From: Ascidiella aspersa
Taxonomy: Eukaryota
DNA length: 64,000 nt
Assembly (NCBI GenBank): GCA_963924565.1
Contig: OZ004607.1
Coordinates: 28,024,001-28,088,000, forward strand
Reading direction: 5' to 3'
Shown: one piece after another, positions 178 through 34,570 of the stretch
How the letters are laid out: every line of letters begins with the position of its first letter
Numbering within the stretch: position 1 is the first letter of the stretch
The notes under the pieces: model-generated
Databases searched by the model: none
What the model was told of the DNA's origin: nothing
The model's input: only the letters and a program-made list of their open reading frames with translations
Program-made: the position numbers and the translations under genes

Positions 178-3100
178 CTCGTGAATTTCGCCGCTCTCGT
201 CTTTGCAAGCGCAATCCATCGCTTCAACGCATTTCCCGTCTTCTCCCATGACCTTGGTGCCCGGGCATCCACATCCGGGAGTGCAGATCCTGGTCGTGAT
301 GCAGAGCTCGCCGTCGTCCAGGAAGTTGCACTTGCGCGGGCACGGGTTGTAGCAGTGAACCGGTTCCTGGCCGTCGGGGCAAGCTGCAGAGAGTTGACAC
401 ATATTATAAATTGCGCTCTGGAAAGGTAAATGGTTTTAGACACACTGTCTTTAGGGCGTGGGGCATAATAAGACTGTAGTATTTCAAGCAAATATGGCAG
501 CGCTCTACCCTAACAGTATAGCAATCCGGAACTTTTTCCATTCAATTCAAATAATACGGTAGTATTTTTAAGTATTCTAGCTTGGAAATACTGTTGCCCT
601 TGGCATGATTCTGTAAGACCATATGTAAAACCACTGCCTTGATCGGGATGAGTGTAACAGAGAGCAATAGACTTTATTTCGATGAAAACCTCTTGAGTTC
701 TTCTCGAAAAGTTCTACCCCTTGGTAAAGCGACGGTACCTGTCCGGTATGGCCGGAGGTCGTGAGTTTGAACCTCACTGCATGCTAGTTGTTTTCCAGCT
801 ATTTTTGCTTGCATCTTGATCGACTTATTCGGTTAATCTATCGAAGGCTATCGGTGTACAATGATAAAGAAGCCATTATCATTGATCGAAAATTTACTTA
901 GGCGGGCTAGTTCACAGTTGTTGTACACGTATTTGAATATGTATCTTTCATTGATTATTTAGGTTTGTCATAATTTTGAAGTTCCCGCAACAAAGGATTT
1001 GCTGGTAAACATAAAGAGTGTGCAGTGTTGAAGCACTTACCCATTGTAGTGGTCGGTTCTGGCGTTGCCACGGTGGTGGTAACAGGCTTTGTTTCCTGAA
1101 AAGCAAAATTAATGTTTTCGAATATCAAAAAATCTTACAAACATGGTCAAGACTTGATGGCAAAATTGCTCATTCAATTATGTCAAAATTTTAACACTTT
1201 TATAGTTCCAAGTGGAAACATACACCTTTATTACCTCAGTCAATTGTCACTAAGCAGTTTTACTTGCATAAATCTATCGGGTTAGGCCACCAAATTTCAT
1301 TGGGTAAAGCGTTACCATGGTAGTGGTCGGTTCGGTTGCAGCTGGACTGGTCGTGGTCACCACAACTCCAGGCGTGGTCGTAGTCTCTTCCGGTTGGCAA
1401 GGATCCCCGGTGCATTTTAGCTGGCTTGCAACGCAGGTGCTGTCAAACGAACAAAGAAGTTGTTAAGAGAGCGTCATTTGCTTCTATTCAGCATACAGCC
1501 AATTTATGCCAATCTAATATTAACTTAATTTAACCGACTTTGTCAAATTTGAAAGGCGTAAGGCAGTTTGCTTCCGTGATATGTTTAGTCTTAATGATTT
1601 GCTTTTATAAACGTTGCTTGGAATTACATTTCAAACAAATCCATTGGTTCATTAATTGCTTTTAATGCAAATCAATTAACTTGCTATAGGGATAACCCGG
1701 ATTAGACAACGATGAATTTAACTAGGATCTGACTATTTACAAAAAATATTGTCGACAAAAGTTCGGCGAAATACCATATTGGAATAAAAGCATTTCAAAG
1801 TGACTGGCTTACAAAACTGGTTGTCTTAGCTAAAATTGTCCAATTTCCAGAAAATAAACCTTAATTAACAGTAAATTGTGAAGTATTTCGAATGCGTCCC
1901 CGACCAACACGCTTACTCACCACTGCATGCAGTTGTACGGGATCACGGCATCCGTTGGTATCACGAGGTCGCCGACCTTGCAAGGGCACTGCTGCCGCTC
2001 GATACAGCGTCCCTCGTGTTGCACGGTGCCGTTGGGGCAGTGGCATCCCTCCACGCAAGTATTGGAACACCCCTCGTCCTCGGCTTCGGTCCAGCAACCG
2101 GCTGAACAAGTGCTGCCGCAGGGCTGGTAGACCTTGCCCGCTTCGCACTGGACGCCTGTGTATGAGAGGTTGCGGCTTGAATATATGCAGCGGTTATTGA
2201 ACGCGTGGAGTTTGGTTAGTAGTCGGACAAGAAGTTTTTTTCGCGGACGAATGTTGTGCGAAATGATATAAATAAGGTTGGAAGTTTCTGTGGTTTACAC
2301 CGATTTGTAAGAATCAGCTATGGCCGGATTTTTATGCTTTCCCTAAGTTATGTTACTAATACAGTGGCTCAAACCAGTTTCTGGTTTTAATAACTTTAAA
2401 TTTTGTCGTACTGGTGATTCAGACCTATTAAAACTTCACAACAATAAAACATTTTTTTCAGGATTTTACACACGACAATAAACCTCACAAATGTGCCAAA
2501 AACTAAGAGTCAAAAACAAAGGTAGGCCTACATCTGAAATCGTGTTACGTCGGCTATTCTTAGAAAACAACTATCGTATTAAATTAAATGCAACAATCCG
2601 AAATTAAGACAGCTCATTTTTACGCAAAAAATCATTCTACTTTGCCCAAGACCGATGCATGTCAACATGTTTGTAGAGATCTGTCAATGTACATGATAAT
2701 AGTGTGGGAAAACAGGAACGGACAACAAAACAGGATGGCTTAACGCACTCACCACAGCTGCCCGTCGATCGCCAGGGAATGTGAACATTGACCTCGTTGC
2801 ACTCACGCACGTAAGCCGCAACGGCCGTACAAAGACACTCGCAGTCGCCGCCCCGATCACAGCCGCATGAGTCCCACAGGCACGACTGGTAGAAGGGTTC
2901 CGGGTCGACAAGGGGGTGACACTCCGAGAAGGGGCTCTCGCGCAGAATGCGGCACGCAAAACGCGCCCAGTCGGCCCTCTGGGGGCTGACGATGCAAGGG
3001 TGAACTGGGTCCTCGGCGGAACGGGGACAGGCACTGAATACCTTCCAGCTGTCGCCGAACACCCGGGTGTTGGTCTCGAGTTCACCTGCAGGTAAAGTGG

Positions 3101-6100
3101 GATCAAGTTTAAATAAAACGGTTATTGGGTGACACCTTTTAACGAATATATTTCTCAGACCTTGTTGTAAGCTAAATCGTCAATTCTGCACCACTGTTTC
3201 CTGACAGATTTCTATGTGGCCCACCAAACAATGTTATATTTAATTTAAAGCAAAAATATACAAACCATATTATGATATTTCAAAGGATTTATGCAATGTT
3301 ATTCACGAAATATTTTATTCTAGCGTTAAATTTGAGTCTTAAAGTTGATAATAATACCAAGTTTTATTTTAGTATCATTTCAATTACCAAGAAATAGGGG
3401 AATTTTAAACAAAAACTTGTACTTTATACACCTAATTGCTATTATACTGGCGAAATAAACGATATTTATCCTTTTTTTTTTCAACCAAACGTCTTAACAA
3501 ACATATTTTCAATAGAAACATGTAACTAGCCATTGCGTCTTACGCCAATACTACACAAACCTTGTCTGGTTTTGAAATCGTTGAGTGCGTTGCCATCGAA
3601 GTTGCCACAAAGTCCGCAAACTTGGCTCTTAAATTTGGGCTCGAGTTTGACGTACACACGCGTGCCGACATCCCACATTATCGTAAGACCGATCTGTTTA
3701 TGGAAAAACAACCCTCGTGAATACATGACTGTTAATTAAGAAAATATAATCAGTTAAAACCAATTAGGGCTGATGAAACATCGTTTCTTGAAGAGATCCA
3801 ATTTTGAACGCTAAAAATACATATTACATTATGTCGTTCATATAAGCACTCTTTGTCACTTACTGGTACTTCCTCTTCGATATATTCGTTTATCAAATAT
3901 ACTGATTTAGAGGTTGTATCTCAAAGGCAGACGTAGAACACACAGGGTAAGAACGACAAAACGAACAAATACAAGCCTAGACGTGATGTTAGTAGAGGTT
4001 TTACCGATGGAACAATATCAAGTTTTTCGTGTTTTTTTTAAGACTTAATAGTATCAGCAGAATCATTGGCGCACCTTCGTTTTGAGAATCATGAAGACGC
4101 CGGCCTGGAGGAAGCGGAAGTCTGCCTTGGGTGTGTCGGGTTTGGCGAATGGGTTCCTGGAAACGATCGGGTCCGAACCGCGGATCAGGTGGATCACGGA
4201 ATCGTACAAGGTGATCTGAGGGAAAGGTAGTCTCTTGTAAGGTGACACATTCAAAAGAGTTATTTTACAATTTTTCAAGGAAATATGATTTTGTATGCTA
4301 TTTGTCGTTTTTAAAAAATAATCGGCTTGGGGCAAATAGTCTAAAATTGGTGGATTAAACTTGGTTATATAAATAGTTCTTGATCAAACATATGTTAAAA
4401 CAAAACGTTCTTTAATGCCTATATTTTAAATTTTTTAAAATCAGTTGAAGTGAATACATTTTAGGGTTCCAAAATAAAGCATTGCAGATACAGCTGGTGA
4501 CGGCTACGATAAAAAATCGTTATACTCAGTGTTTTTAAGGTGTTTTGAGGCTTAAACGGTCCCTCAAAAAATAATCTGCTTCTGTAACCACAGCGGAAAA
4601 TTATATGTTAGTACTCAAATGAAATAGTTACAGACTGCGGTCCCCAAAGAATTATTTCGGTACTTCAAATTTTCTACGCAGTCAGCAAGCTAAACCTTCA
4701 AAAATAGCATAGTCATAACGACATTACATCAACGTATAAGAAAAGCTCTCGTCAAAGCTAACCGGCTGTTGCTTCGCTAAACCGCGTCAATCACGCAAGT
4801 CAGCCATTTTTCGACGACTTACCTTGACAGCTTTGGTACACGTGACGCCGCCGGTACTGCAGGGCACGTTCTCCACAGTCACACGGAAGGTGCCGACTCC
4901 GTCGCCGCAAAAGTCCTCTGCCAGCACGTACGTGCAGTCGCCATGGAACTCGTACTTCTTCTTGTCAAAGGTCTCGTAGTGAGGATCGCCGTACGCCGAG
5001 CAGTAGGCGGGACAGTCCCGATCGGTGCAGTCCCACTGCGAGTTCTTGCAGCGGCTGTACGGTACGGAATGAATCAATTTTGCATTTTGTTATTATAAGT
5101 TATTGATCAATAAGTGGGTATTTATTGCATTATTGCGTCAGGGTCTTACTTGGATTTTGTACCTGCGTATTACAATGTAAATTGCCCAAGTTTAACGAAA
5201 TGGACCTATCGCTATATTCCTGAAAAATAACTGTTTATCGGACTAACAAAATAGAAGTTGATTAGCGTTTTTTTTGCAATTTTTTAGCTATTTGTTCAAT
5301 GCAATATAGCACTATTTGATAATAATTGCTTTTAAAGTTTTACCAAAATTTATAAACATTGAACTCTTGCTCCAAACGATTTACTTTTAGTGCCCAAATA
5401 CGCTGCCGAAATGTCGGCTAGTATATTACGTTATGTAACAGATTCATTTCCGACTAAAATCCTAATTGAACCCAAAAACACATAGATTCCAAACTTTGCG
5501 ATAAAAAAATAGCAGCACTTCCATTAAACAACGCTATAAAAACAAAAATCACCCACCAGAAGTTGCAATCTTCTTTGACCCAAGAACCGTCGTTGTAGCT
5601 TCGTCCCTTGTGGTGGCAGGGGCATGCCTCGGGCTCTACACACTCGCCGTCGTTGTCGACTGTTCCGTTGGCGCAGGCGCAGCCCTCGTGGCATGCAACC
5701 GGCATGCATCTCATGTGCATGTTCTTGCAAGTGGTCTGGCACTCGGTGCAGTTGTGCCAGGTCTTGCCCTGCGCGTAAAAGCGATAGTTTGTTGTTTTTG
5801 TTGTCTTTTAACCTTAAGTTTTAACTTTTATGATGCTTTCTAAGTTTGAAAAAAATCACATTTTGTTTTAAGGACAAGTTATATCTAACTTAATTTTTAG
5901 GTTATAATTTTCTTAACTGTTAAATAAAAAACGCACAACATCAATATTAATTGAATTACTGAGTTTTAAAAATGAACAAGCTTTCTAAAGGGCTGAGTTT
6001 GAGAAAACACCTTGTGCTAGTGTTAAGATTTTGGGTTGTTGGAAACAGGAAAATCGCAACTATTCAAAAACGCAAAGGTTTCCATTGCAACAGTTACAAC

Positions 6101-9100
6101 AAGCGTAAAAATACCTGTTCGCAAACGTTTTCCTTCGTGCAACCGGCAATCTCGTGACACTTCCAAGCGCCGTTTTCACACCTGCATTGCTCGCAAAGAG
6201 AATCGCGCGTGTCTCCGTGCGTATAAGGCACGTTCCTGTATAACAACCGACAAATTGAAAACATGTAAACAATTATAAAAAAAAATCATGGAAAATTTGT
6301 CAAAAGATTTGTCAATCTATGACAGGGGTTGGCAACTGTGGCCGCGGCCCCAAAGTGGTCCTTTTAGCCATTTTCAACTATGGAAATACAATTGTTTTTG
6401 CGAAAGGCGATATGCATTCTGTGGCATCTAGTGCCGTGTGACTCATAAACTGTACAGTCTAAATTTTGTTAAATTAGACCAGAAAGTCGTTATTTCGAAC
6501 AATATGTGAATTTTCTTTTATGTGCCTGAATATGTGCGTCACCTATTCTTTTAATTGAAGTTTTGCAACGAAATACAATTTTGCGCAACCTTTTTCGCGC
6601 TACGCGCTATTAGACTGGAGCTGCAATATTAGCGCGTGATTTCGCTCGAGAACAACATACGTTTTTGCGATTAATTGTAATATGACGTAACTTTGTGACG
6701 TCATTTTTTAAAATTGCATGTCCCCAACCAAAACGAAATCCTGCATCCTCACCTGTTTTCGTAATGGTTTAACGGGTAGGCCTTAAATAGCTCTGGAAAA
6801 AGTATTTTGGGCCGCGACAAAAAAGTTTGTCGACCACTGATCTATTTTATGGTGATTGTATTTATTAACATCTCTTAAAGAACAAGTGAGCAGGTCCCAA
6901 ATCTTTTTTACTGCCCGCAGTTCGAAATCATCTATATGGTCTTACCTGTGGTAGCAGGAGCACTTCTGTACTTCGACGCAGGACTCAATGTAGGAATCGT
7001 AAACTTGGCCATCGGGACAACGACATCCCTCGACACATTCCGCACTCTGACATTATGTAAAATAAATATTATTTTTGGTATAAGCATTACAGTAATGAAT
7101 TCAAGTTCGGAAAAATGTATAGACTAAGATTCTTTGACACGCTAATTAAAATTAATGAAGATTCCATCGAAATATGTGGTCTATATAAGATTCCAAAACA
7201 ACGAGCAAATATCTTTATGTAAATTAAATTTTGCTAGATTATGTATTCATTCTTTTTAATAAAGGTTTGTGGTTTGTTAAAATCTTCATCTTGCATTTGA
7301 GCTGCAAACCTACTCTATATAAAAATCCATTTAATTCCTTGAAATTAACGCTAACTTTAATTTAACACAACGAACAGGTTGATAAGTCTGTATCGCATCC
7401 GAAAAAGCACCAAACTCGCACCTCGCCCATAGGCTATACACACTCACGAAAAAAGTCTTACCGAAGAGCACTGGTCCGCCGTTCCGTTGCTGAGCATCTT
7501 GCAAGTGATCTCGCAGTCGGCGCCGCCGCACTCGTCCCAGACCCGGCCGTTGGGGCAGCCCACTGTACAGCCAGACGCCTCACGCCAAGATGGAGTTCCA
7601 GTCACTGGGCTTCCAGCCAGCGAGCAAGCCCGGGCGTAGGCGCTCAGCACTGTGCACTTGCACGCTTCGGCGTCGGCGCTGAACTTGTGCAGACAGTGGC
7701 AGACGTCGTGCTGGCACATGGTCAGGTACGGCGCCGGGTCCACGATTAGGTTGCACTTCTGGAAGGCTCCTGCGTGGCAGGGTTCGGACAACATAATATA
7801 CGTTAAGGCGTGGTCACGCGCTGTATTACTGCTTTTCAGGGCTTAGAAGTGAATGAAGCTTATATACCTAAAAAAATATCCACACAAGGTGGAATTCATG
7901 GTACGTTCTTGCTCTTTGGGGTAGACACGATGTTAAACGATAAATAAATACGACTATTTTAAATAGCTTGCAATGCCGTGACGCATTGTATTATTGTGTA
8001 ACTCTGATCGGGGCTTAAAATACAACTCGGGCTCGTATTTAAATATAGCAAGTTTGAAGTCCTGCGTCGTGATGGGGAAACATTTCGATTTATTTTGTAT
8101 AAGGTATAGGAGCATGGATGCCTTTTAGACAAAGGTATTAAAAGTACTTGAATAGACCAGCTGACTATTCCAGGTTGTTTTTTACACATAAAGGGATTAC
8201 ATTTAAGCAAAGTTATTAAAAATATTTGAATAGATCAGCTGACTAATCCAGGTTGTTGTTTTTTACACATAGAGGGTTTTAAATACTGGTTTAACTCAAG
8301 AAGCAAACTTGCGAAACAAATCTACAGTATTTTGAATTATTTTAACAAAGGTAACACGCTGGTTTAAATAGTTAAAATAATTTTTGTTAGGTTTTTTGTT
8401 TATATATGAGATCGCCAAAATTGATTAATTATTCAAAAGTATATTTTGTGTTTTAACCAAAGTTGTTAATCACTAAATCGCTCATTTCAAAAAATTCGGC
8501 AGATCGTATAAACTCACCGAGTTTAAGTCCCTGACACATAACAGAGGCATGGGTGGCGTATTGGCTTGCGATGACGCACGCGTCCACGGTGAGGCCGGTG
8601 TTGGCCTCGTTCGCCTTGCACGTCACATCCGTCTTCCACGCGTTGCCGAATTCGCCAACGTCGACCGTGATGGCGCCAGAGGGCAGCGTGTAGTCGTCCA
8701 CCTGATTCAGGTTGTAGAGGCCACACAAGCCTTGCACCTGAAAGTTAAGTCAAACATTTCAGTTAACGATATTTTGGTTTTTAACACAATTTTACGAGCA
8801 TAAAAGCAATAGGACAATGTCCGAGCATTTTGCGGGTTTTAAACAAACTTTAATGCTATGAAAAACAATAACAGCTTTTGGCTAGACTTCACAATTGGTA
8901 TGTTTTTTTTTTGTACAGTTGTACCAACAAAGCAAGGCACCAAGATGAATTTCGCATTAACTTAAAAGCGAGTGTTTTGAGAAGGAGAGGTCAAGATAAA
9001 AACTCTTGAGTTAACTATGTTCAGGATTGAAAGGGTTTGCATAAAAGAATAGAAAATATTAGCACGATGCTTACGTTGATCACATGAAAACAACCCGCGG

Positions 9101-15100: not shown

Positions 15101-18100
15101 TTTTTGGCAGTTGAACGGTCTTGCCATTGTAGACGACGCTCTGGTCGGGATAGAGCATGACGTTGTGCATTGGTCCCATCTCGATACGAACAGCGCGCTT
15201 GCAAGATCCGTCGTCATTGCAGTCATAGTTGTTGATAACCTGGTTTCGGCACAAACGTACGTTGAAACATTATAAAGCCAATCCAACATGGAAAATTATA
15301 CCATTATGTAGAAGGTAATACATTTTTTTTTTGGCCACTTTACTGAAAAATTCCAAAGGTCAGGTTTTTGTAGATCATTCACAAAATGAAAAATGATATG
15401 ACATTAAAGAATATATAACGATTTGCAAGAACCAGTCTATGCGCAATAGTTTCAAAACCCAAGAAAGACTGACGAATGGCAATCCTCTTATCCAAGGTCG
15501 TTCATGTAAGCTTAAACTTTCTTGTTTTTTCTCTGTAACGGGAAGGTTTTTTATTGGTATTTGTGAGTTATGATTTGCGCCGAAATGTTTGTCCAAAATT
15601 TTACAATAAATACTACGCTAGAAAGCACTTTTGATACATTGTCTTTAACTAGGCCACCAAATTTTATGTAAAATGCCTTCAATTTCGAGCAAGCATCCAA
15701 GGCAAGTTGGTGGAAAGCTAAAATGCAACCTACTCTGGTCTGGATTGGCAGTGTAGTATGGCTTAAGTCAGTAGGTTTTTCCAATCTTGTGAAACAAGAA
15801 TTTAGCTTTGGAATGCGACGCAACAGTAATGGTTTTCAAACAAAAAAGTTTACGTAATGTCTTAAATGGCGCCACGACATCTCAAAAGAGAACTTACCGT
15901 GACTCGAAACGTGCCGCTGCACTCGTATGCGAGGCTGTATGCGCAGTCGCCGGGAAAGTAGAACTGCCTGCCGTCGAAGCTGTGGTAGTGGTGGAAGCCC
16001 CAGGTCGAGCAGACCGACTCGTGCTCGTAGGAGGCCAGGCCGTCAACGTCGACGATCGACGGCGAGCCGACTTCGGCCGCGTTCTCGCAGGCGCGTCCCG
16101 AGAAACCGATCGGGCACACACAGTGGTCCTTTTCCACGCACTTGCCGCCATTCTGACACGGTGTCGTGCAAATGGCTGACAAAAAGAAAACAGCAAAAAA
16201 ATGTTTACTCTTTATCAAAACAGTAATTGCCATGCAACGTATACCTGTGCACATCATGCTTTAGAAACTGTCCGACTAATGAGGGTTTTCATATAGCTGT
16301 AAAACAATGACTGAATAGCCGACCTAAAAATCCGATAGGCAAGCTACAGATTGGCACACCGCACTATTTAAGTTTAAATCAGAAATAAACTGTCAATATT
16401 GAAGTGGGATACCGCGAAGGGTTTCAATTAAAAAAACAGCATTTAAAACTTATTTAATGTTGCGGTGAAAATACCATTTCAGTTAAATAGTAATGAAAAG
16501 TTTGCTGTTATCAAAATCTGTTCCATGACGATTCTGTTTATACACAACACTTAATAGACATAAACGAAAAAACATTAAACACTTAAAATCGGTCAGGTAA
16601 AATGCGCGAACACAAAAGAGACAACCTATGTTATAGTAAAGTATCGAACACTCAATTTTTATTTCATATTGATTTTATGTGAATTTTAAAATCGACAGAA
16701 TCGGTTTCAGAACTTATGTTATAAACTAATATGGTAAAAATGCGTGAAAAAAATTACTAGTTTAATAACTGAATGTTAAACAGCGAAACATCGTGTCGTA
16801 ACGACTTAAAGTTAAAACAGACAAAATTGTATCAACGTTTACCACAAAAAGTGAGATAAATTGATTGACCAATTAAAAAGAAAGAAGTCAGTCCAACAAG
16901 TTGCGAAAGTGCTCACCTTCAGCGCAAAGTTTGCCAGTGTATCCGTCCAAGCAGAGGCAGCCCTTCCCCGCGATGCAACGTCCACCATTGAGACACTCGC
17001 CACCGCAATCGAGAATAGCTTTTGGAAAATGATTAAAGATATTAAACCTAATTCGTTGATCCTAAAAAATCGTCCTTTTCTCTACTAAGTGGCGGGCAGC
17101 ATGGATGTAGATATGTGTCTGCCTACTGTCCACTGACACACACATGTCAAAAATAAAACATGGATTAAAAAAATAAAGTGTTCTTTGGGCAAAATGTAAC
17201 AATATAGGAAAAAAATATCTGTTTTCGTAAATAACTTTAAATTATGTCTATTTTTCCAAAATAGTTTTTGTCTGTTTTCCAAAAAAATGTTGGTCATTTA
17301 TTTAATCCTAATTTCGTGTGTATTTCGGTATTTTAGAATGTTTTGTCGAAAATAAGGGCAGAACATAGCACTCTAAACATCGTCACCTGTTTCGCACTGG
17401 GTTCCTTCCCAACCGGACTTGCATTCGCACTTGTTCGGTGCCACACATCGTCCACCGTTCAAGCAAGACTTGCACACAGCTACAAAAACAAGCACATAGC
17501 ATTAACAATTCAAACAGTTTACATGCCTATTAGAATTGTTTTAATTGGGTGTTCTAGATTCATTGTCATTGACGTTGTTAGGATCATAATAATAATCTAC
17601 TGTTATTATTGTATTCCAGTAAAGGTATTCATTTATTTTTATGAGTGTTTTAGAAGATGGTAGATTGACATTTAAGTGTAGATTGATATTTTATTTTTTA
17701 TTTGAGTGCTTTAGAAGATGGTAGATTGATATTTAAAAAATAATCTAAAAAAATAAATCGGTAAAAACATTTTATTTTAATCCAACGACGGTTGAAAAAA
17801 CTTCCCTTTTTTAATGTGACGTCACAGGAAGTGCTACAACATCATTGGGGCATATTTTGATCAAAATCGAGATTGCACTGCGTCACAAACTTTCGTGGAG
17901 CTTTTCAGGCGGTAGTGACGCGGAAAGGTTCGCGAGCCTTTCGCTTCTGAGTCACGTCCGACAATGGAGACGACTTGGACGGAGTCGAGTGGCCCGTGTT
18001 CTAATCTGGTCGAATCGGGAACATGCTTGTTCCTTGTGCGCGTCGAGTCTGTTTACCCTGGCACCCGGACTCACGATCTGTCACCTTTGTGTCCATTGGG

Positions 18101-23056: not shown

Positions 23057-23200
23057 CATTATAGGCTAGGTATTTGCTAATAATATTTATTTTAACTAAT
23101 TAAAGTTTTATTTGAGCCAATTTTTCTTTGATCAAACCTTGTTCGACGTATTTTCTCAAGTTCATAAAAAATGCAATTTTCTAACGACGTTGGCCTAAAA

Positions 23201-24422
23201 CAGGTGTGGGCAACCTTTCCTAAATCGAGGACCAAATCTAACTCAGCAAGGTTTTTTTGGGCCTCGATTTCCACTCAAAATTAAATTTTAGTTGTTACAG
23301 TTTTTAATCAGTATGATATTATACCTTTCAATCAAGGAATACTGCACGATTTATTTTTAAGCAATTAAATAGTCTAAATTTTAGGCAATTTAAAAACTCT
23401 AAACATTTAAAAGCCTTAAAGCAAGTCCTTGTCGTGAATTTCGTGGTAAATATGTTGGCTGTCGCTGCCGCGTTTAAGAGGCCGGACGTGGGCATATTCG
23501 TCAGCAGCCGGCCTGCTAGCGCGAGCAACCTGCTCTTGGTCGCACGGCATTGTGGAATAGGCGAGATACGTTGGTATGTCGCCACTCGTTTCGACTCCGA
23601 AACTCGTCGAAGCGCCACGGAAGGGTTCGTCTACGGGTGGTGCGTAGCGAAACATTGATTCCAATCTGTTGATGTCCTCGTGCATATCGGGGAGCTGTTT
23701 CATCAATTGCCCAGCTTTGCTGCTGGCGTCCTTTGCGTTGTGCTTTTCCGGCGCTTGCTTGGCGTTCGTGGCCATGCGAAGGCCGCAGGGGATTTCGAGC
23801 GGCGTCGGATTCTTGATGGGAACGAATTGGCCCGCCTTGTACGCCGGCTCTGCAAAGAAGCTGCCTTTGGAGTAGGATAAACTACCGCTTTTGTTATTGA
23901 TGATTGGACTTAGAGAGGTATTACTTACAATGGCCATATTGTAAATACGGTTAAAATTACAAAAACACTATCAATTGGCAACTTGAATGCTTCAAAAAGT
24001 TTCCACGACACAAAGATTATGCTGTTTCTAAATATATATGGGAAGTCATAAACTAATTGTTTAACTTTTTTTAGGTTATTTAAATAGTGCCGATAAACTC
24101 AAGATGTATTCATCTTGTTCGAAACTTGTAAATCATTCACGCAAAGCGCGAGAAATTATACATTTATATAGACTACAGTTGGCGATAACTTCATTGTTGA
24201 GAGTTCCGTGGTAGGCCTATACCTAGCACTGTTGGGCAAAGAAGATTCCCGCAAACACCCCACATTCAAATAAGACTCGCGCAAACTGCAAACATTTTTA
24301 TTGTTAAATTGTCTAAATATAAGGCATTGCATCGTGCCTATAGCTTTAAAAGAGGCGGCAAGCCGGATGGTTTGCGTTAACGGGTCATATCTGGCCAGCG
24401 AGCCGTAAGTTGTCCACACCTA
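23201..24422. mobile_element. hAT (Charlie-like) non-autonomous element enclosing the duplicated SPATA2-tail ORF
   Basis: Left end CAGGTGTGGGCAAC at 23201. The right end read on the minus strand is TAGGTGTGGACAAC (12/14 match). Charlie-type subterminal sequence ATCTGGCCAGCGAGCCGTAAGTTG. Flanks GCCTAAAA / GACTAAAC (6/8, degenerate 8-bp TSD). Confidence 0.6.
23416..23937 (-). CDS. Intact 173-aa ORF: diverged duplicate of the C-terminal tail of the SPATA2-like gene, with no PUB domain; functional gene or young pseudogene
   Basis: Collinear similarity to about 29000-29660 (FVPIK.P.PL.IP.G.RMAT.AKQAPE.H.AK; GASTSFGVET; DQEQV.R.SRP; QHIYHEIHDKD). All visible indels preserve the frame. Confidence 0.6.
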   Translation of the reverse strand: MAIVSNTSLSPIINNKSGSLSYSKGSFFAEPAYKAGQFVPIKNPTPLEIPCGLRMATNAKQAPEKHNAKDASSKAGQLMKQLPDMHEDINRLESMFRYAPPVDEPFRGASTSFGVETSGDIPTYLAYSTMPCDQEQVARASRPAADEYAHVRPLKRGSDSQHIYHEIHDKDLL

Positions 24423-27400
24423 GACTAAACCTATTTTTGTAGACTCATTTACCGGTAAAATATTTGTCGATATGCTGTATGCTAAAAGAATCCCTATAAT
24501 ATTCCTTTGATATTTTTAAGTGGCGAATCCATATTTGTTTTTAAAGGAATGGGACAGTTAGGTGGAAGTCAAAAAACATTTTTTGGCGAACAACTTAAAA
24601 ACAATAAAAAATATTTTGTTTGTCTTGTGTTTATAAAACTATTCACAAGGTTGACTTTATAACACACAAAAATATATTGATGCGGATTTTTGTATTCAAA
24701 ATCAAATTCTGGACAGGGCTGCTTGCACAAGCCGTTATGACTTCAAAAAAGCTATAATAGAGAAATTGGCAAGAGGCGAAAATTGCAAAGTTTAGTAAAC
24801 ATAAATTAGGTATTATAAACAAAATAAGATAATACTGCAAAAATGTCAAAAAAGAAAACTTTGGGAAATCTTAAATCTTTTTGTTCAGAATTAGAGATGT
24901 CTGATCCTGATAACCGATATTTTGAGAATCAAATACAGCCATCCGTAGCCTAATCGTCACGACCAAAAGTGATAAAATTGAAACGTATAAAATAAAAAGG
25001 TAATTGTTTTCAGCTTGAACTTAGGTCAGGAGAACAAACCTTTCTTTAACGTTAAAAGCCCAGGAACCTGATAAGTTCATTTATTTTTCTGTGAGAAAAC
25101 AAAACAGGTCGAAAAAGCTGCTTTTGTTTGCAAATCACGACTGAAATAACTGTTACAGTTTGATATTCGACAACAGATACAACCCTAGTATCTGACGAGT
25201 CCCAATACGATCTGGCCCTGGAGATCTGCTCCAATTCTACATAATTTTTAATTGTAATTCTAATAATTAACACTACATTACTTTTCCATTGCTATTAGTT
25301 TGTGGCCTATAGCGCTAAAATTGATTTTGAATTACTTTTAATTCAATTTTTATGCCCTAATAAAAAATATGCATGCAAAACGCGCTGAAATCCATAATTT
25401 TTAATGTAAAATTATAGGATTTGATTTTGGAAAGGAACATGGTATCAACATGTTTTGGAGATAAAGTGTAAAAGATTCGGTTGAAGCCAAATAAATTACA
25501 AGTAGAAGACAAGACCAAAGAGTCACTTCTATACTGTATACAGTTGGGAAACTTTAACTGAAAAAGCCATTTTTTTTTCAATTCTTGTGTAAATTGAATT
25601 ATATAAAGAAATCGACTTTAAAGTTTTCTTACACAAACTCAAATTTGTGCTTAGGCGTGAATTTGTTTGGCTATGCATCAACCTATGACCACATGTTGCA
25701 GTATAGGGTTGCTTCATCACCCTTAAACCGTCACCAAATGTGGCTGAAATTTTAATAATATTTGAACAGAGGTGTCGCTGCTGCACATTCTTCAAAAAAG
25801 GTTAACCTTAGCAGACTTGCACAACTAAAATTAGATTACGCCTACTATTAAAATTAGGGCATTTCAGTTTTTCCAAATTATATTAGAATTGAAATTTTAA
25901 ATAAAAATTGCATTGTTTTACCAATTTAGTTTAAATCCCACTTATTCTCAAAGGAATGTAAATGGCAAACATTGTTGTGGTAATTTTTTTTAAGTTTTAT
26001 AGTGTAGCGTATGCTTTTCAGGCTGTAAAAGTTACCTACTATAGTCGTTGCAACCAAGTTAAATTCTTTGTTTCAAATGAGAAACTAAAAATGCCGTTGG
26101 ACAAAGTAGCATTTTTGGTAAAATCCGAATTCAATTAGAACTAGAATTAGAGCATAACAAGCAATTCTTAAATTGGATTAGAATTAGAATTAACCACATT
26201 ATGTTCTAATTCGTTAAATTAGAAAACTAGAAATATCTAGTTATCCAAGTCTAAAACTAAGGCCTCGCAGCTTTATGTGTTCCTCCGACTCTTGGCTCGT
26301 AAGACTTTTCAAATGCTTTTGATTACAACAGATCCTCAATGTTACATTGCTATACCTAAACTAGTTTAGATTTTCCAAAAGATTTTTTCCCCACAAAACA
26401 ATTGCTGATGACCAACAATACCCTAAATAAGGATATGGTCGGATACCAAATTGTAGAATAGTTACTTATCGGATACGATGGTGGTATCGGTGCCGATTAT
26501 ATACAACATTAATATAGCAAAATTAGCCATGATTTTCACTCCGACGCAACGGCACTCACCTTGAAAAGTAACTTTATCAAAAAAATAATATGTTAATCAC
26601 TATCTTTATAACGCTCAATCAAGTTTCGCCATAAAACCAAATACAAATACCCTAACATAAAATAAATATAACTTTAAAGTTTAATCTGTTTTACTCGTTT
26701 CTGAATAGAAATAAAGTTTAATATGGGATCGGATCGAGATACGTTTTGTCTAGAATCGGCATCGCAACAACCGGACGTCCCTACCCTGAACATCCAAAAA
26801 GGTTTTAGCATGTACATGCACCAACTTAATATTTAGTCGCCGTTTATACAGTCTAGGTTTCTTCTACTGGCGCGTAGGTATGTTGTGCTTTTATATCGTT
26901 AATCAGTAACCTACTTCAAAGAAGCAGAAAATTTGGAGGGTAATTACATACTCATGCGTTTTCCCTTTAATAATAAACTGTTCAACACAATGCCACTGAG
27001 CAGCACATAAGCTGATTGCAATGCAAATAAGCTGCTTACAACAATTTTAACGAACCCGCAAAATCCCTCGCCTTGGTAAACACAAGGCCAGGCAGGCCTT
27101 GCTAGTTTCGTGAAATGTTGTGCATGTTTTTATAACCATGTTTGTATATCAATAATTGTTAGCCTTGGTGAAATATTTGCTTTGCAACGTAGGGCCTACA
27201 ACTGCACAACCTATTTTTTTTTATCATGTATGCATACAAAATGTAAACAGTTTAGTTTACCTTAATAAGAAAAGGGAAAAAAATTGAATTAAATCACGTT
27301 AAAGTATTAACTTGTCTGTAAGGCATTTTTGATAAGCCTCATTATTTGCCTTTGGCGCTATGCAAACAATTCATGTCATGTTTAGGATAATACTGTAACA

Positions 27401-28970
27401 AGAACAAAGAAATTAATTTTTGTCGAAAAAGTTCGATGTGGAAAGAACCTTGCAATGAATCACTCAATGACTAATGCAAACAATTCAAGCGAGCAATGAG
27501 CGCTAGCTACAAAGCAAGCTTACCACTTTGGTTTAGGAAATAACCTGACACAAAGTTGCTCATGAAAAATGATTAACCATGAAACGATTTACTTTACTGG
27601 AGAGGCTACACTGCAGAGTAGGCTTTACCAGTGCTGCAAATAACCACCATCGTTACACCACTGTTGCACATAAATTATGATGACACAGCTCAGTCTGTAA
27701 ATAAAATGAAATATTACAACATCCAGTATTTGCAGTCGACAAATACATCACAAAGCCAGTGGAAAAACCCTCAAATTCCTTGTATAATCCTGTTGAAAAG
27801 TGATTTCGACCATAGTTATTGCTTGAACATTGTAGGCTACTGGAATGAGTACTTTTAACGCAAGGCAGGAACACAAATTTCCTAAAAAGCGTTTATTTTG
27901 ATAACATAGCAACATGGCGTGAGGTCAGTTCATGAATATTTAAAAAAGCAGGTGACGGTAGTTTTACATAATCTTGCGTTCAGTATGACCAATTGACCGT
28001 AACGCCAAACAGTATAATAGGCTTTCCGTTGCCCAGCCTATCTGCGCTGGAAAATCACCCTGCGGCCAATAAACAACCATTAAGTGGTTGTGTCACGACT
28101 CCCTCCAAGTCACATACAGCACAAGAATTGCTCAATAAAAAGCATACACGAACAATGCTTCCTGGTCAAAGGGCATTTCCAGTACTGCTTGTTTGGCTTA
28201 GTCGGTGGCGCTTGGAATTGGAAAACTCGCAAAGCCACAGGCTTTATTAGTTTGCCTACAACCCAGGGATATTGTAGCCGAAGTCGATTTCATTGTCATT
28301 GCTTAAACGCATTGTTGAGCGTTTTTATATCGTTTCGCTTTGTGTCTAACGTTAAAACAATTTTACTAATACCAGATATTTGGTTTCTATTTTTTGCAGT
28401 AATCCCTTTCAGGAATAAACGTGTTCACAACCCGCGCATTAGAGTAGAAAAAAATTGTTTACATTAAATTAACTAAAATATTTGACAATTACTTGTAGGT
28501 GCCCTTTTTGACCACTTTTCGCTAAGGTGAATAAGAAAAACAACTTTTTGGAACCATAAATTTGCTTTATTCCGCTTGAACGTAACCAAAGTGTCGGGCT
28601 TTTTAAACAAAACGATTTAATTTGTTGAAAATCACCAGTAAAAATCAAATGAATACAAGGCCCAAGTTTATGCGGTTCTGAAAAGTAAGTGGCGCAAATC
28701 GCGACTTTACGTAATAAGACAAAAGAAAAGGTAAAATTTGAAATCAAAGTATAATAAAAAGGTACAGCATGCACACCAGCGATCACAATCGGTCGAACAA
28801 TAATAAAAGCACACGATTGCAAAACCGTCGATTTTTCGGCCCGTCGCACTTCGCACGGCGATTTCATCGCCCTTACGCTACGCTGAGCAATGTAAATTTA
28901 CCACAAGCCGGCGTAGAAAGTCCATCAGGAGTAATTCACCCGTTGGGAAACCTAGGTGGGCGCGCAAAGC

Positions 28971-31900
28971 TTAAGCCTGGTTCCACAAGGGGCGCGCGGA
29001 CAGCACGTCTTTGTCATGAATTTCGTGGTAAATATGTTGGGTATCTTCGGTTTTGCTGTCGCTGCCGCGCTTAGGACGCCGGACATGGACGTATTCGCCA
29101 GCAACCGGCCTGCTAGGGCGAGAAACCTGCTCTTGGTCGCGCGACATTGTGAAATAGGCAGGCGACGTTAGCATGCCGCCACCATAGGAAGACGCGTGGG
29201 CTGAGCTGCGTTCATTAGGTCCTACTCGCGCCTTGTCCATGGGTCGCACGCTTACGTAGTTGCCAGTCACTGGGACGCCGGTAGTGCGCTTTAACCTCTG
29301 CATCGTTTCGACGCCGAAGCTCGTCGAAGCGCCAGCACGGAAGGGTTCGTCGATAAGTGGTGGGTAACGAATCATCGACTCCGACCCGTAGATGTCCTCG
29401 TGCTCATCGGAGAGCTGTGACATGAACCGCCCGGCCCTGCTGCTAACGTGCTTGGCGCTGTGCGTTTCCGGCGCTTGCTTAGCGTGCGTGGCCATGCGAT
29501 GGCCGTAGGGGATTTTAAGCGGGGCTGGGTGTTTAATAGGAACGAATCCCGTGTCGTACCCCGGCTTCTCGGCCGCAAAGATCCTGCCTTCCGCGTAGGA
29601 GGAACGAGCCGATCTCGACGGCAAAGTGGCGCTGGTGTAGCTGGGAGGAACGATAGCCGGCGTAGAGAAGTTTCGTACGGGCTGGCCTTGTATCGTGTGA
29701 AAGTCTATCACCTGCGGCTGGTATTCTTTAAACCGTGATACCGGGATTGGAATGTCCACTTCCGCGCTGTTGCCCATTTTACGCGAGGCAATTACGCAGC
29801 GAACGTGCACCAGAAAGAAGTCCATGCCGGCGAGCATTAGTGAGTCCTTCCACGACGGCGCGGTGGTGAGGCTTTGTTGGTGGAAGAAGAAGGTCTGTTT
29901 GGGCGACGAGTATATGTAGCCTAGCTTTAGCATGAGCTCCTCAACGACGTCCTGATGGAAGTGGGCCGCGATGCCGTGGTGGTAGCTGCCGCTGTAGGTC
30001 TGAAAAAAACGAGTACAGTGTCACTACCGATGTTGTAATTAGTGCCGAAAAATTGTTTGGCAAACTCTGCCATATCCAATGTGCAGGTATGCAAAGGGGG
30101 TACAGTTAATGTTTTTAGAAAGACACAGTTGATGTTGACGTATGTGAGTCTTTCTGTTTTCGTGCCAGATATAATAACTAATAGACTTTTACTATTAAAC
30201 AACTAATTAGAAGTTTTTTTTAACTTTTTGAGGGTAGGCAGGTCCAGGGAGGTGCAAGGCAATGACCCATCAAAAATTCGCTAATGTTTGCCTGTTTTAA
30301 CTAAGGAAATGCCAAAATTGTTTCGCGTTTTGCACATTTCCTAATCTTGATTTATATGTCAAACAGTAAGTCAAACAGCAAAGTAAGAAAACCTTTTCAG
30401 CGCTATGCCGCTATGCGAACCATGTAACTCTATAAAAATATTTAGCTCTTGCAAGAATCTGGCTGTTGTATCTAAATTAACACCTAAACAACTTTTTTAA
30501 AGGCGACAAAGGTGAAAAGCGTTAGAGCACTGTAATAGGCTACAAAGTGGTGTCCAATATTGGAAAACAAAAAAGAGCATGATCAAAACGTGTTAATTCA
30601 CAATAATAAAGGCTAATTAGTAGGGCGATTATTTCTTGACCTGTCAAAACAGGCAAAATTTTGTCAAATTTTACATGATAGGTCAAAATTTGTTAAAATT
30701 ATTTCAAATGAAAATCATATAAAATGCACATAAATCGTTTACAAAATAAATAAAAAACTAAAGTCAGCTTTTTTAAATTGTCGTTCAGGTAAACTTTTAT
30801 CAAAAAAACAAATAGTTTTGAATTAAATCTAACGACATTTTAAGTGTAATAAATCCTAATTAGAGCAATATGCGGTATACGCGAGCCGGCAGAATTAACT
30901 ACGCACTATGCAGGCCTAGTTTATAGAATTAGGTTCAGTTCAAACGTTTTTTCTTTATACTGTTATGTATCTTTGAGTTGGACCAACGTATTGAACAATA
31001 TTTGCTGTATTTTTTGCTTGTGATTTGCAATTATCCTATTTCCTATGTCAATCATATGCAAGGTCTTTTTAATTTTCTGCAGTTATTTTTACGTTTTATT
31101 TCAACTGTTTACCAACATCTTTCTAAAATAACCAGCGTATTGTTTTTTGGGCGATTTAGTAGTTGTTTGTCGTTTTGAAATGACAAAAATATCAACTAAA
31201 TAAGAATTCTCATGAGTTTTGCATAAACCCGAAAAAATAACTGATTGCATTCGACCGGTCTAGTCAGTAAAACATCAAAAAGGCATGGTCAATGACGCGA
31301 AGACACTAATGCAGTAATTAAAACAACAATATGTTGTTTAAATCAATGTATTTCTAATAGGTCAAAATTTTGACAAAAAGATATATTTTTTGGTCCAAAT
31401 TTGTCCAAATTTCGATTTTTCAGTTAAAAAAATAATCACCCTACTAATTAGTAATCACAACAACTAAATTAGCATAGATATGTGCCACTGTTTTATTACT
31501 TTAAGTGTCTTACATATTCCACACAAAACTGCGTCCATAAAACAATATTTTTTCTTTTTTTAATTTTAAGGTAACTTGGTTTAAAAAGAAGCAAAATTTC
31601 TCTAAATATTTAATCTTAAAAAACATAATTTGTTATAAAATTTCTGATTGAAAATAATAAAAGTGTTTTAAATGCCCAGATGAGGAGTGGGAAAATGTGA
31701 AATGCAGATTGTTTTTTAAGTGTTACCCAAAATGGCATGAAGGGTACACAAACCTGTATTCTTAATGTATTTATTGTGATTAAACATTGTATATGTTTTT
31801 CATAGACCTTTTTGTCCCTTAACAAATGTTTAAAGAGGTACAGTTGGCCAAAGCTCCATACCATTTGTTATTTGTGACCTTAAAAATAATTTTGTCTTCT

Positions 31901-34570
31901 GGTTCCACTAACAGCCTGGTCTTACGGACTCTGGCCTGTGTTCGCAATTATCCACCTAACTTCATTTAACAGAACTTGCTAATGCAGCTCACATGCTTAA
32001 CAGTTTGCTAACTTCTTGTGACCTATATATATAGTAAGTATACATTTTTATGCAAGTGGTAAAATATTTACAAAAGTTTTTACTTTTAGTCTTAAAGACA
32101 TATGTGATTCATAATTGTTGTGTTCTTTTACCTTGATTTTGTAATAAGACTTTCTCCATGGTGCGCGAAGAATTCGCAATGCATACAAACTCAAAAGAAA
32201 GAAGACAGAAGCAAAACTTCCCCAGGTGTTCTTGATTTTGGCTTTCTTGTTTCTAGTAAATAAATTAAGAAAATAAATCACTTTTTGGTGAAAATTAAAC
32301 ACTTTTATTTCCATATAGCTTTTAACGAATAAGATAGACATTTATACGTTTATACAAGGAATGTGATCGGCTAATTACTGATTTTTTAGCTCATAACATA
32401 GTTTATTAAATATGACATGCTTAACCGAAGTAACAAGACTATGACGTTGTTAGAAAATTTATTGTTATTGAGGTTTAGACCCCTTCATGTAGGTATCATA
32501 AGGGTGATTGATTTTATGCATGCACAAAGTTTATATTTAGTACCTGCCCAATGCATAGTCTCAGTGCCAATTATATGGATCATGCATAGTATCAGTGCCA
32601 ATTATATGGCTATCAGTGCCAATTATATGGATAAGGTTTCTACAAACGAATCTGTTTCTTATTAAGCTTTATTTATGTGAGATTATTTTTCTTTTCAGTT
32701 TAAGCATAGTTTTGAAATTTTCTCAAACAAGAAAAATAATTTAAACAAGTTTTGTTCAAATTATTAAAACTGGTAAATTGCTCACTTAACCTGGTCTAAT
32801 TCAGGTATTTCGTGTAGTAGAATTATACTTTTTTATTTTCAGTAACCGCTCAAACTTACTTATATACAATGTCCTTAAATTTGCGCAGCGCATAGTATGG
32901 TGACCCTTCCAGTTGACTTGACGAGCATCTGTTGAGGTAACTTTCAGCAGCACTAAAAACCAGTTTGTACTCTTCACAGTCTTCAACACTATCTTCATCA
33001 TGACAGTAAACATCCAGACTACAAATGAAAAAGTAATAAGTTGATTAAACTTAAGTAAATTGACTGAAAAAATGTGTATAAATGTAACACCTTAACTTAG
33101 GGGAAATCCAAAACATAGTTAATTTAGTTATATAATAACTTCTGTCTTTGCAAAGGTAAAGAACATACTTTTTTCGTTACAGAAAATGCAGATAGTAACT
33201 TGGATATAGTGACTTTTCGTCTGTAACAACTCCTGTTAAAAATCTAGTTTAAAAACCATATGTTTTCAATTTAGTAATGACTTTGGTATAGTAACTATAT
33301 GTATGAACAGTTTCATTATGGTGACACTTCTCATTTTTCTGTACCTTGAGCTCAAAATTTCCGAATAATGACACTCATGAGTTTATGATGCAAAAATATA
33401 GTAGAAAAGGTTCATCAGCTGGTTGATAATGATAACGCTAATGTAATAAAAGCGTAAGCTACTGTGGCTTCTGGGTAATTTTCAAGCATTTTGTTCTTGT
33501 GATCTTAGGTCTCTTTGCATAAGCCAGGTTCATTGTCAGTGTGTAATTGATGTATCTATCATAGATATATAACTTTGTGAAATTCCTTAAAAAAAAGTCT
33601 GTTGCTAAATGCTTAAGAATACCAAAAGTTTTGTTATTAGGATGTACAATAATTGAATTTAGCTGGTCCGTTACCTCCATGTTCTACTGTAGTTATCTGC
33701 AGTCAGTTACCTTGAAATGTTCTAAAGCAGGGATGTCCAACCTGCGGCCCGCGGGCCACATTGCGGCCCGTCTGAAATTTTTGTGCGGCCCGACAGTCAT
33801 TTTCACTCCCAAGTAGTATTTTAAACGTTCAATATTAGCCTAATTAAATGTACCAGTCAGCTTTTAGGGGCGCACTAATAGTATAGTATGGGTAAAAAAA
33901 TATATATATAATTCTAAAGGCCCGTTATGACTCTAAATAGCAATACTTAATCTTGAAACTTAATAGGTTCTGCGGCCCATTAAATTATTTCAAGTGTCAA
34001 TGCGGCCAACTATAATAAAATGTTGGACATCCCTGTTCTAAAGTGTGGTACTTTTTTTAGGTCCATTCAGGTGGCACTATAAATGAATTCTACTGTATAT
34101 CAATTGACATATTATGATTAAAGAAACATCTTAAACCGTTTTGAACAATTTCACATGCCTTGCTTTTGAGTGATTGTAATATTATAACAGTAAACAATTT
34201 GTTGTACATCAAGCCATCAAAGGCTGATGATTAATCTGTATGATGACCTATCAGCCATAGCTCTATAACCTGAGCTTTCTCATGAGACAACAAGTCAATC
34301 ACTAAAAATAGGAGGGTTAAATTACAGACCACATGGGTCCAATGTAAGGTGATATTAAATCAAAACTATGTGGACCCCTGCAGTAACATCTACAGTTACT
34401 TCATCATTTAAGGCAATTAAGTTTTTTTTTATTTAGGTGCAGTGGTCTGACATCATATTTAGAACTAATTAAAGACATAAAACTTACCTTATTTCTGGAT
34501 TGGTAATAAATTGTTCTTTGTAAGTTGATTTGTAATGATTATAATCCATTCTTTTTCCATTATGCGACAT
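28971..34570 (-). CDS. SPATA2: SPATA2/SPATA2L/tamozhennic-like PUB-domain adaptor, 463 aa
   Basis: Exons 34488-34570, 32860-33018, 32132-32252 and 28971-29999 are all GT-AG and in phase. The spliced protein has AAESYL...YALRKFKDIV...FFLLSLYALRILRAPWRKSYYKIKTYSGSY...LMLKLGY...MDFFLVHVRC. This matches the SPATA2 PUB signature as I recall it (PWKKEFRSIKTYTG...MGY...FELFLAKVEC). Confidence 0.85.
30621..31443. mobile_element. hAT-type non-autonomous element in a SPATA2-like intron
   Basis: TIRs TAGGGCGATTATTT / AAATAATCACCCTA, perfect TSD CTAATTAG, subterminal GTCAAAATTT repeats. Confidence 0.85.
32551..32631. repeat. Short tandem repeat, TCAGTGCCAATTATATGG x3
   Basis: Visible directly in the sequence. 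Confidence 0.85.
33728..34035. mobile_element. hAT (Charlie-like) MITE in the first coding intron of the SPATA2-like gene
   Basis: TIRs CAGGGATGTCCAAC / GTTGGACATCCCTG, perfect TSD TTCTAAAG, GCGGCCC subterminal repeats. Confidence 0.92.

Follow-up and report, generated by a model that had tools for sequence, protein, structure and literature searches.

The window, which is the whole stretch of 64,000 nucleotides that was analyzed and corresponds to C1:28024001-28088000, carries a single non-autonomous hAT-type element at positions 23201-24422. Its left arm (23201..23395, + strand) begins with a TIR at 23201-23214 and its right arm (23888..24422, + strand) ends with a TIR at 24409-24422; both arms were recognized by matches to a family model and by alignments to two related elements, L042 and L047. 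An 8-bp TSD flanks the element on the left (23193..23200, gcctaaaa) and on the right (24423..24430, gactaaac). Between the arms lies a captured fragment, or cargo, of 469 bp (23419..23887, - strand), which was copied from part of a SPATA2-like gene's terminal exon and has since diverged, and which comprises the C-terminal tail only. An ORF of 173 codons with an ATG and a TAA (23416..23937, - strand) was taken from the ORF listing and is chimeric between element and cargo. The source of the cargo lies ~5.5 kb away on the same strand, where blastn, protein matches and a reading of the junctions place the parental segment at 29002..29610 (- strand), within a terminal exon at 28971..30020 (- strand). 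This exon, delimited by translation and by alignment of homologues, is a 349-codon open frame that starts near TYSGSYHH. A further ORF at 32048..32341 (- strand) contains an upstream exon of the parent with the motif ...TWGSFASVFFLLSLYALRILRAPWRKSY (...APWRKSY), as judged by eye from the ORF listing against the homologues P0002, P0003 and P0006.

The TIRs of the element, CAGGTGTGGGCAAC at 23201 and TAGGTGTGGACAAC (the reverse complement of 24409-24422), are identical at 12 of 14 positions. Like the TIR of the wider family, CAGGGGTGGGCAAC, they are short and begin with CAG or TAG, as hAT elements do. The left TSD agrees with the right one at six of eight positions, and fits the family target consensus nTnTAnAn in its TA (positions 4-5) and in its A at position 7, but not in the T of position 2. 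This agreement of TIRs and TSDs exceeds chance and is backed by the matches of both ends to a family profile built from 28 full-length members, in which nhmmer aligned 23195-23266 with model positions 5-76 (E 5.9e-7) and 24269-24427 with positions 176-346 (E 8.2e-24). The preliminary description of this locus, which had reported hAT-type TIRs (12/14) together with a degenerate 8-bp TSD, is thereby confirmed. The right end (24315-24421) is matched by ~30 copies of the family, with 71-83% identity to the 331-bp copies, and altogether ~66 bp of the left end and ~165 bp of the right end are held in common with the 331-bp MITE. When the genome was searched by BLAST, the left end (23201-23415) found itself alone and the right end found relatives elsewhere. 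The idea that the two ends come from different families was dropped, since the profile and the alignments to L042 and L047 show that the left arm is merely more diverged.

The family was searched for in a genome of 308 Mb in 75 contigs, using as a query a 514-bp element at L003, and at least 1326 candidates were found at first look. The query element (L003:1500-2013, the same as L010) has both end types and the TSD GATTAGAT/GCTTAGAT, and ~185 bp of its interior is tandemly duplicated, which shows that internal rearrangement is common in this MITE family. The canonical MITE is 331 bp long, and 28 full-length copies were extracted from the fetched loci. An 8-bp TSD matching at seven or more of its eight positions is found in 20 of these 28 copies, from which the target consensus nTnTAnAn was derived (T at position 2 in 16/20, TA at positions 4-5 in 20/20 and A at position 7 in 15/20). 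This consensus agrees with the hAT target nTnnnnAn, and TSDs of 8 bp together with such a target are hallmarks of the hAT superfamily. Judged by its TSDs, target and TIRs, the family is probably of hAT type. Across the genome, the hAT dimerization domain PF05699 has at least 150 scored matches (428 candidates), several of them within stop-free frames of 589-674 aa; examples are C1:17246119-17246322, C3:30886669-30886902 and C4:16829535-16829738. The genome may thus contain intact, possibly active hAT transposases. Other members of the MITE family also occur in the window, all on the - strand: a near-full copy occupies 55187-55614 (E 9.5e-16 and 1.2e-5), a piece of one end is present at 33721-33802, a short way upstream of the SPATA2-like gene, and weak fragments are found at 30287-30349 (E 0.0027, part of the interior) and 6805-6845.

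Longer relatives were found by searching with the interior sequence 23938-24268. One of them, L042:1117-1897, is a cargo-free element of 781 bp with a perfect TSD, TACTAAAC, and a second cargo-free element, L047:979-1762, resembles it; such relatives measure 780-800 bp. In local pairwise alignments, 23195-23395 of the window aligns with L042 1111-1319 at 66% identity, and also with L047 974-1143, while 23888-24430 aligns with L042 1365-1905 at 63% identity, and also with L047 1297-1760. Because these arm alignments are collinear, the window element is one member of a ~780-bp subfamily that has been interrupted at a single internal point. It shares both ends, the 8-bp TSD and the target preference with the canonical 331-bp MITE, but differs from it in belonging to this longer, diverged subfamily with another interior. 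It had been proposed that both ends would belong to one family, would normally occur together and would have empty copies, and the 28 full-length 331-bp copies and the cargo-free L042 and L047 bear this out.

The cargo is distinct from the surrounding DNA in composition, with a GC content of 0.54 in the core vs 0.32-0.38 in the flanks. By blastn, 23420-23877 matches 29002-29600 in the same orientation with 77-79% nucleotide identity (E 4e-63 and 2e-42). The cargo is shorter than the parental segment (469 vs ~609 bp, a ratio of 0.77) owing to deletions of 117 bp and 15 bp, and a six-frame search of the whole genome found two copies only, that of the element and that of the parent. Read directly on the coding strand, the left junction at ~23419 is marked by the change from the ...CTGTCC of the parent to ...CTTTAA in the copy. 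At the right junction, exon homology ends at ~23887 and homology to the arm starts from 23888 (CTTTTGTTA vs CTTTTCTTA in L042). Exon homology is thus confined between the arms, with boundaries at 23396/23419 and 23887/23888. The preliminary description had taken the whole core, 23416-23937, as the exon copy; a GC-rich copy ~5.5 kb from its parent is indeed present, but the captured segment is 23419-23887 and not the whole ORF. At the point of interruption, at most 45 bp of the element (L042 1320-1364), or at most 5.8% of its length, have given way to ~490 bp of foreign DNA. The cargo falls 30 nt short of the stop codon of the parent, and both a 3′ UTR and a poly(A) tract are missing from it, which shows that it is not a retrocopy.

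Nine homologues of the parent were found with HMMER among 1.84 billion representative proteins, the best with 42% identity; so low a value for the best homologue means that the species itself and its close relatives are absent from the protein library. In the alignment with its homologues, the parent reads "KLGYIY...QTFFFHQQSL...AGMDFFLVHVRC", followed by a tail with the conserved motifs IP[WY]xHR, (E)D-[IL]-Y (which we take to be of PIM type), IRYPP, NYVxxxP, GEYVHV and HIY[HQ]EI. These tail motifs are kept in the homologues P0001-P0006 of other species and are therefore ancestral, which sets the direction of copying as from the parent to the element. The name SPATA2-like, which was proposed earlier, is a reasonable label, but a weak one: P0002, P0003 and P0006 match PF21388 (SPATA2_PUB-like) below its threshold (E 3.7e-5 to 8.7e-4; 19-24 bits vs a cut-off of 27), and the alignment profile has a weak match (E 0.12) to PDB 5ljm, the solved PUB domain of SPATA2. 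The exons of the parent were treated separately; the chimeric ORF, the parent ORF and the 349-codon frame, each searched as a single exon, had no match in Pfam. In RNA run X6, the 3′ end of the parent is covered 5-10x over 28501-29100 with the first mate on the + strand, which fits an RNA from the minus strand. Neighboring minus-strand ORFs at 2637-3106, 15862-16257, 56339-56746 and 61082-62042 resemble exons of genes for extracellular domains by eye; those downstream are EGF-like and cysteine-rich VWD/C8-like, and those upstream resemble sushi/CCP, C-type-lectin and FN3 domains. An assignment of the parent exon to a sushi, CTLD or FN3 gene upstream was considered and dropped, as a compact SPATA2-like gene emerges from the homologues and from the exon at 32048-32341.

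The chimeric ORF is assembled from both sources. Codons 1-17 and the stop are derived from the element, and the cargo, read in its native frame, supplies codons 18-172. The ATG (CAT at 23935-23937 on the + strand) lies within a GCCAT block that is conserved in L042 and L047, and the stop codon TAA at 23416-23418 is the first triplet on the element side of the left breakpoint. The new ORF with its own ATG and stop that had been described therefore exists, both of these codons being supplied by the element, but it shows no sign of expression in the one RNA run sampled and has signs of relaxed constraint. Its protein is 50% identical to that of the 320-codon ORF at 28971-29933 (E 2e-59). BLASTP also aligned residues 2-20 with the parent ('AIV...'), a likeness put down to chance, since this stretch is element sequence with homology to L042, L043, L044 and L047.

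Over 152 cargo codons, the pairwise dN and dS between copy and parent are 0.16 and 0.40, with a ratio of 0.40; as this value averages the lineage of the copy with that of the parent, which is constrained, it does not decide whether the copy is constrained. All indels between copy and parent are in frame, which is the only mildly surprising feature of the ORF, and there may have been some constraint on the copy for at least part of its history. A frame stays open after 45-90 random substitutions in 13-35% of neutral simulations. Changes were polarized with six outgroups, and columns in which at least four of the six agree were treated as conserved. At such columns, both sequences keep the residue in 19 cases, the parent alone in 10 and the copy alone in one; the binomial probability of 10 or more out of 11, as we calculate it, is ~0.006. 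In D-[IL]-Y the copy no longer has the invariant Tyr (EDIN for EDIY), in IPxxHR it lacks the His and in RYPP one Pro, and a deletion has removed a 39-residue segment that holds NYVxxxP; the C-terminal HIYHEIHDKD is retained. Constraint on the copy has thus been relaxed. In other individuals, all three of the listed variants in the ORF (A138V, P131L and I121M) are nonsynonymous, with A, A and C at 23525, 23546 and 23575 (runs X5, X2 and partly X1) vs G, G and T in the assembly. RNA run X6, a single run of which ~6% was sampled, has zero reads over 23101-25700, and a search of 1.84 billion representative proteins found no homologue of the chimera. A possible splice acceptor inside the ORF (ttctttgcag|AG), which would make it an alternative terminal exon, is without read support and was set aside. 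Overall, the copy looks silent and decaying rather than like a new gene, and the ORF probably lacks a function.

The element is covered by reads in the DNA runs X5, X1 and X2, and contigs from X2 span both of its boundaries. No read or contig that skips 23201-24422, as an empty-site allele would, was found in these three runs; the insertion is thus present in every sample examined, as is expected of an old event. Nearby, at 25700-26300, is a high-copy repeat with a DNA depth of 10-30x vs a baseline of 1-6x, a contig word depth of up to 47,842, many alternative joints and loose ends, and a few RNA reads.

We interpret 23201-24422 as a single-copy Pack-TIR of hAT type whose cargo was acquired by gap filling in situ and then drifted, and put the probability of this reading at roughly 0.72. 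Anatomy, membership in the family, cargo-free relatives, the direction from parent to copy, the single copy number and the relaxation of constraint are established for this element; among the mechanisms of capture, local repair with template switching fits them best. It is hypothesized that an old, non-autonomous hAT-like element of ~780 bp was resident in intergenic DNA ~5 kb downstream of the SPATA2-like gene and suffered a double-strand break in its interior, either induced by a transposase or spontaneous. Repair synthesis would then have switched template to nearby sequence in cis and back again, so that 45 bp of the element at most were replaced. The native frame of the fragment would have been preserved, an ATG of the element 50 nt upstream would have happened to be in that frame, and a TAA of the element at the other junction would have closed an ORF of 173 codons. 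Later drift would account for the ~22% divergence of the copy from its parent and for the loss of conserved tail motifs. Any microhomology at the junctions is hidden by a divergence of 20-35%, and the template switch is hence a putative step. A local capture, for example during gap repair, had also been suggested in the preliminary description, and the cis source, the single copy and the internal breakpoints make this the best-fitting mechanism that can be inferred.

The main rival is a capture that depended on transposition and took place elsewhere, by abortive gap repair or according to the FoSTeST model, in a family member within or near the SPATA2-like exon, followed by a short hop to 23201 that created the TSD. 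It is established that hAT elements tend to reinsert near their origin, which fits such a hop; the TIRs of the element are complete and a TSD is present, the genome has many matches to the hAT transposase domain in long open frames, and the weak family-interior fragment at 30287-30349 lies near the parent exon. A local hop is also allowed for a minority of cases in the published survey of animal Pack-TIRs (PMC8277862), but there the transposed Pack-TIRs are multicopy and far from their parents, and those in cis are attributed to gap filling in situ. The single copy in the genome also counts against a hop, as does the setting of the parental segment, all of which is coding and has no element remnant on either side, and we regard this history as unlikely. 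Far less credible is an ordinary segmental duplication of the exon with an independent MITE insertion or fragment on either side by coincidence. The family is abundant enough to supply these (at least 1326 candidates), and has other copies and fragments in the window (55187-55614 and 33721-33802), but the arms are complementary halves of one element in the correct order and orientation, and meet the cargo at neighboring positions of that element (L042 1319 and 1365). An inner TIR is absent from both arms, and the 8-bp TSD brackets the whole. Homology to the exon goes no further than the arms on either side and is wholly internal to the element, which excludes an ordinary duplication and two independent flanking insertions; the preliminary description had itself named homology extending past the TIRs as the sign of such a duplication, and what is found is that exon homology ends inside the element, where arm homology resumes. 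The alignments of the arms to L042 and L047 effectively refute this origin.

A different question is whether the product of the capture is used, as a functional new gene or as an alternative 3′ exon of the SPATA2-like gene, in either case yielding a protein that consists of the tail only and has no PUB-like domain. The 173 codons have stayed open despite a divergence of ~22%, with every indel in frame, a pairwise dN/dS of 0.40 and the C-terminal HIYHEIHDKD intact, and exonic Pack-TIRs are more often transcribed than others (PMC8277862). Retention of the frame by chance in 13-35% of simulations weakens the first of these points, and the 10-to-1 excess of losses at conserved sites, which include the invariant Tyr, together with the deletion of a conserved motif, points the other way. 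So do the nonsynonymous nature of all three listed variants, the absence of any homologue of the chimera among 1.84 billion representative proteins, and the zero RNA reads in ~6% of run X6, in which the parent is covered. We consider a functional ORF improbable. At slightly longer odds still, the captured tail, framed by the ATG and stop of the element, would be expressed as a PUB-less protein or serve as an alternative 3′ exon, in some tissue or stage unsampled by the RNA run; in that case the retained motifs would be HIYHEI and EY.HV. If true, this would be a new gene assembled by a transposon in an invertebrate.

Reading the element as a Pack-TIR filled in situ places it in a known class. 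The preliminary description had considered the capture of gene fragments to be much rarer in animals than in plants, which is outdated, as 370 animal Pack-TIRs have been catalogued, of which 208 are carried by hAT elements, the commonest superfamily (Tan et al. 2021, Nat Commun 12:4280, PMC8277862). Most of these are single-copy and 57% lie within 15 kb of their parent; their breakpoints are skewed towards the interior of the element, the median gap is 4.6% of the size of the TE, and the authors explain them by template switching while a gap within a resident element was filled (PMC8277862). The window element resembles these single-copy Pack-TIRs, and Pack-hAT elements in particular, in having two intact arms around an internal non-TE segment and a unique parent on the same chromosome at less than 15 kb. 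The resemblance extends to the internal breakpoints, the small loss of TE sequence (at most 5.8% vs a median of 4.6%), the single copy, the exonic source and the hAT carrier. Arms at 23201-23395 and 23888-24422 flank the non-TE insert, and insert-free elements exist in L042 and L047. The parent is unique, the copy is not a retrocopy, and no family match occurs within 100 bp of 29002-29610, the nearest to the parental segment being the weak one at 30287-30349. The published pipeline, which covered 100 species, accepted only copies with an identity to the parent of 90% or more and a length ratio of 80-120%, and its cargo has a median length of 224 bp (PMC8277862). With an identity of 77-79% and a length ratio of 0.77, the window element falls outside these limits of recency; the 90% threshold is a filter for detection and does not define the biology, and the present case is older than the catalogued ones. 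It is much older than these, its cargo of 469 bp is about twice the median of 224 bp, and it has a long chimeric ORF. The genome studied here, which is of marine invertebrate type, is probably not among the 100 species of that study.

Similarities to other systems are also apparent. As in the Pack-MULEs and Pack-CACTA elements of plants, a TIR element carries a gene fragment, sometimes with a chimeric ORF, and GC-rich cargo is set in an AT-rich element. The TSD of the window element is 8 bp long with a target of hAT type, in contrast to 9-10 bp in MULEs and 3 bp in CACTA elements. Whereas plant Pack-MULEs are often multicopy, off the chromosome of the parent and frequently transcribed, the window element is single-copy and in cis, with no transcripts seen in ~6% of one RNA run. 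Ac/Ds and P elements with internal deletions can contain filler DNA, where a break was repaired from an ectopic template, preferentially in cis, which left foreign sequence between intact termini. The mechanism proposed for the window element, abortive gap repair by SDSA with template switching, is like that of this filler DNA; the Ac/Ds and P cases were shown experimentally, whereas the mechanism in the window is inferred from anatomy alone. Repair of the Ac/Ds and P type is cited as a model for animal Pack-TIRs as well (PMC8277862).

Capture of this type is already documented in animals, and the window element is a new and older example. No new mechanism is added, and nothing in the one RNA run, sampled at ~6%, indicates that the ORF is used. 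What the locus provides is a fully dissected exon duplication associated with a DNA transposon in an animal genome, older than the cases in the published catalogue. It indicates that a capture can still have both its TIRs and an open chimeric frame after ~0.4 synonymous substitutions per site, and that catalogues filtered at 90% identity or more miss such old captures.
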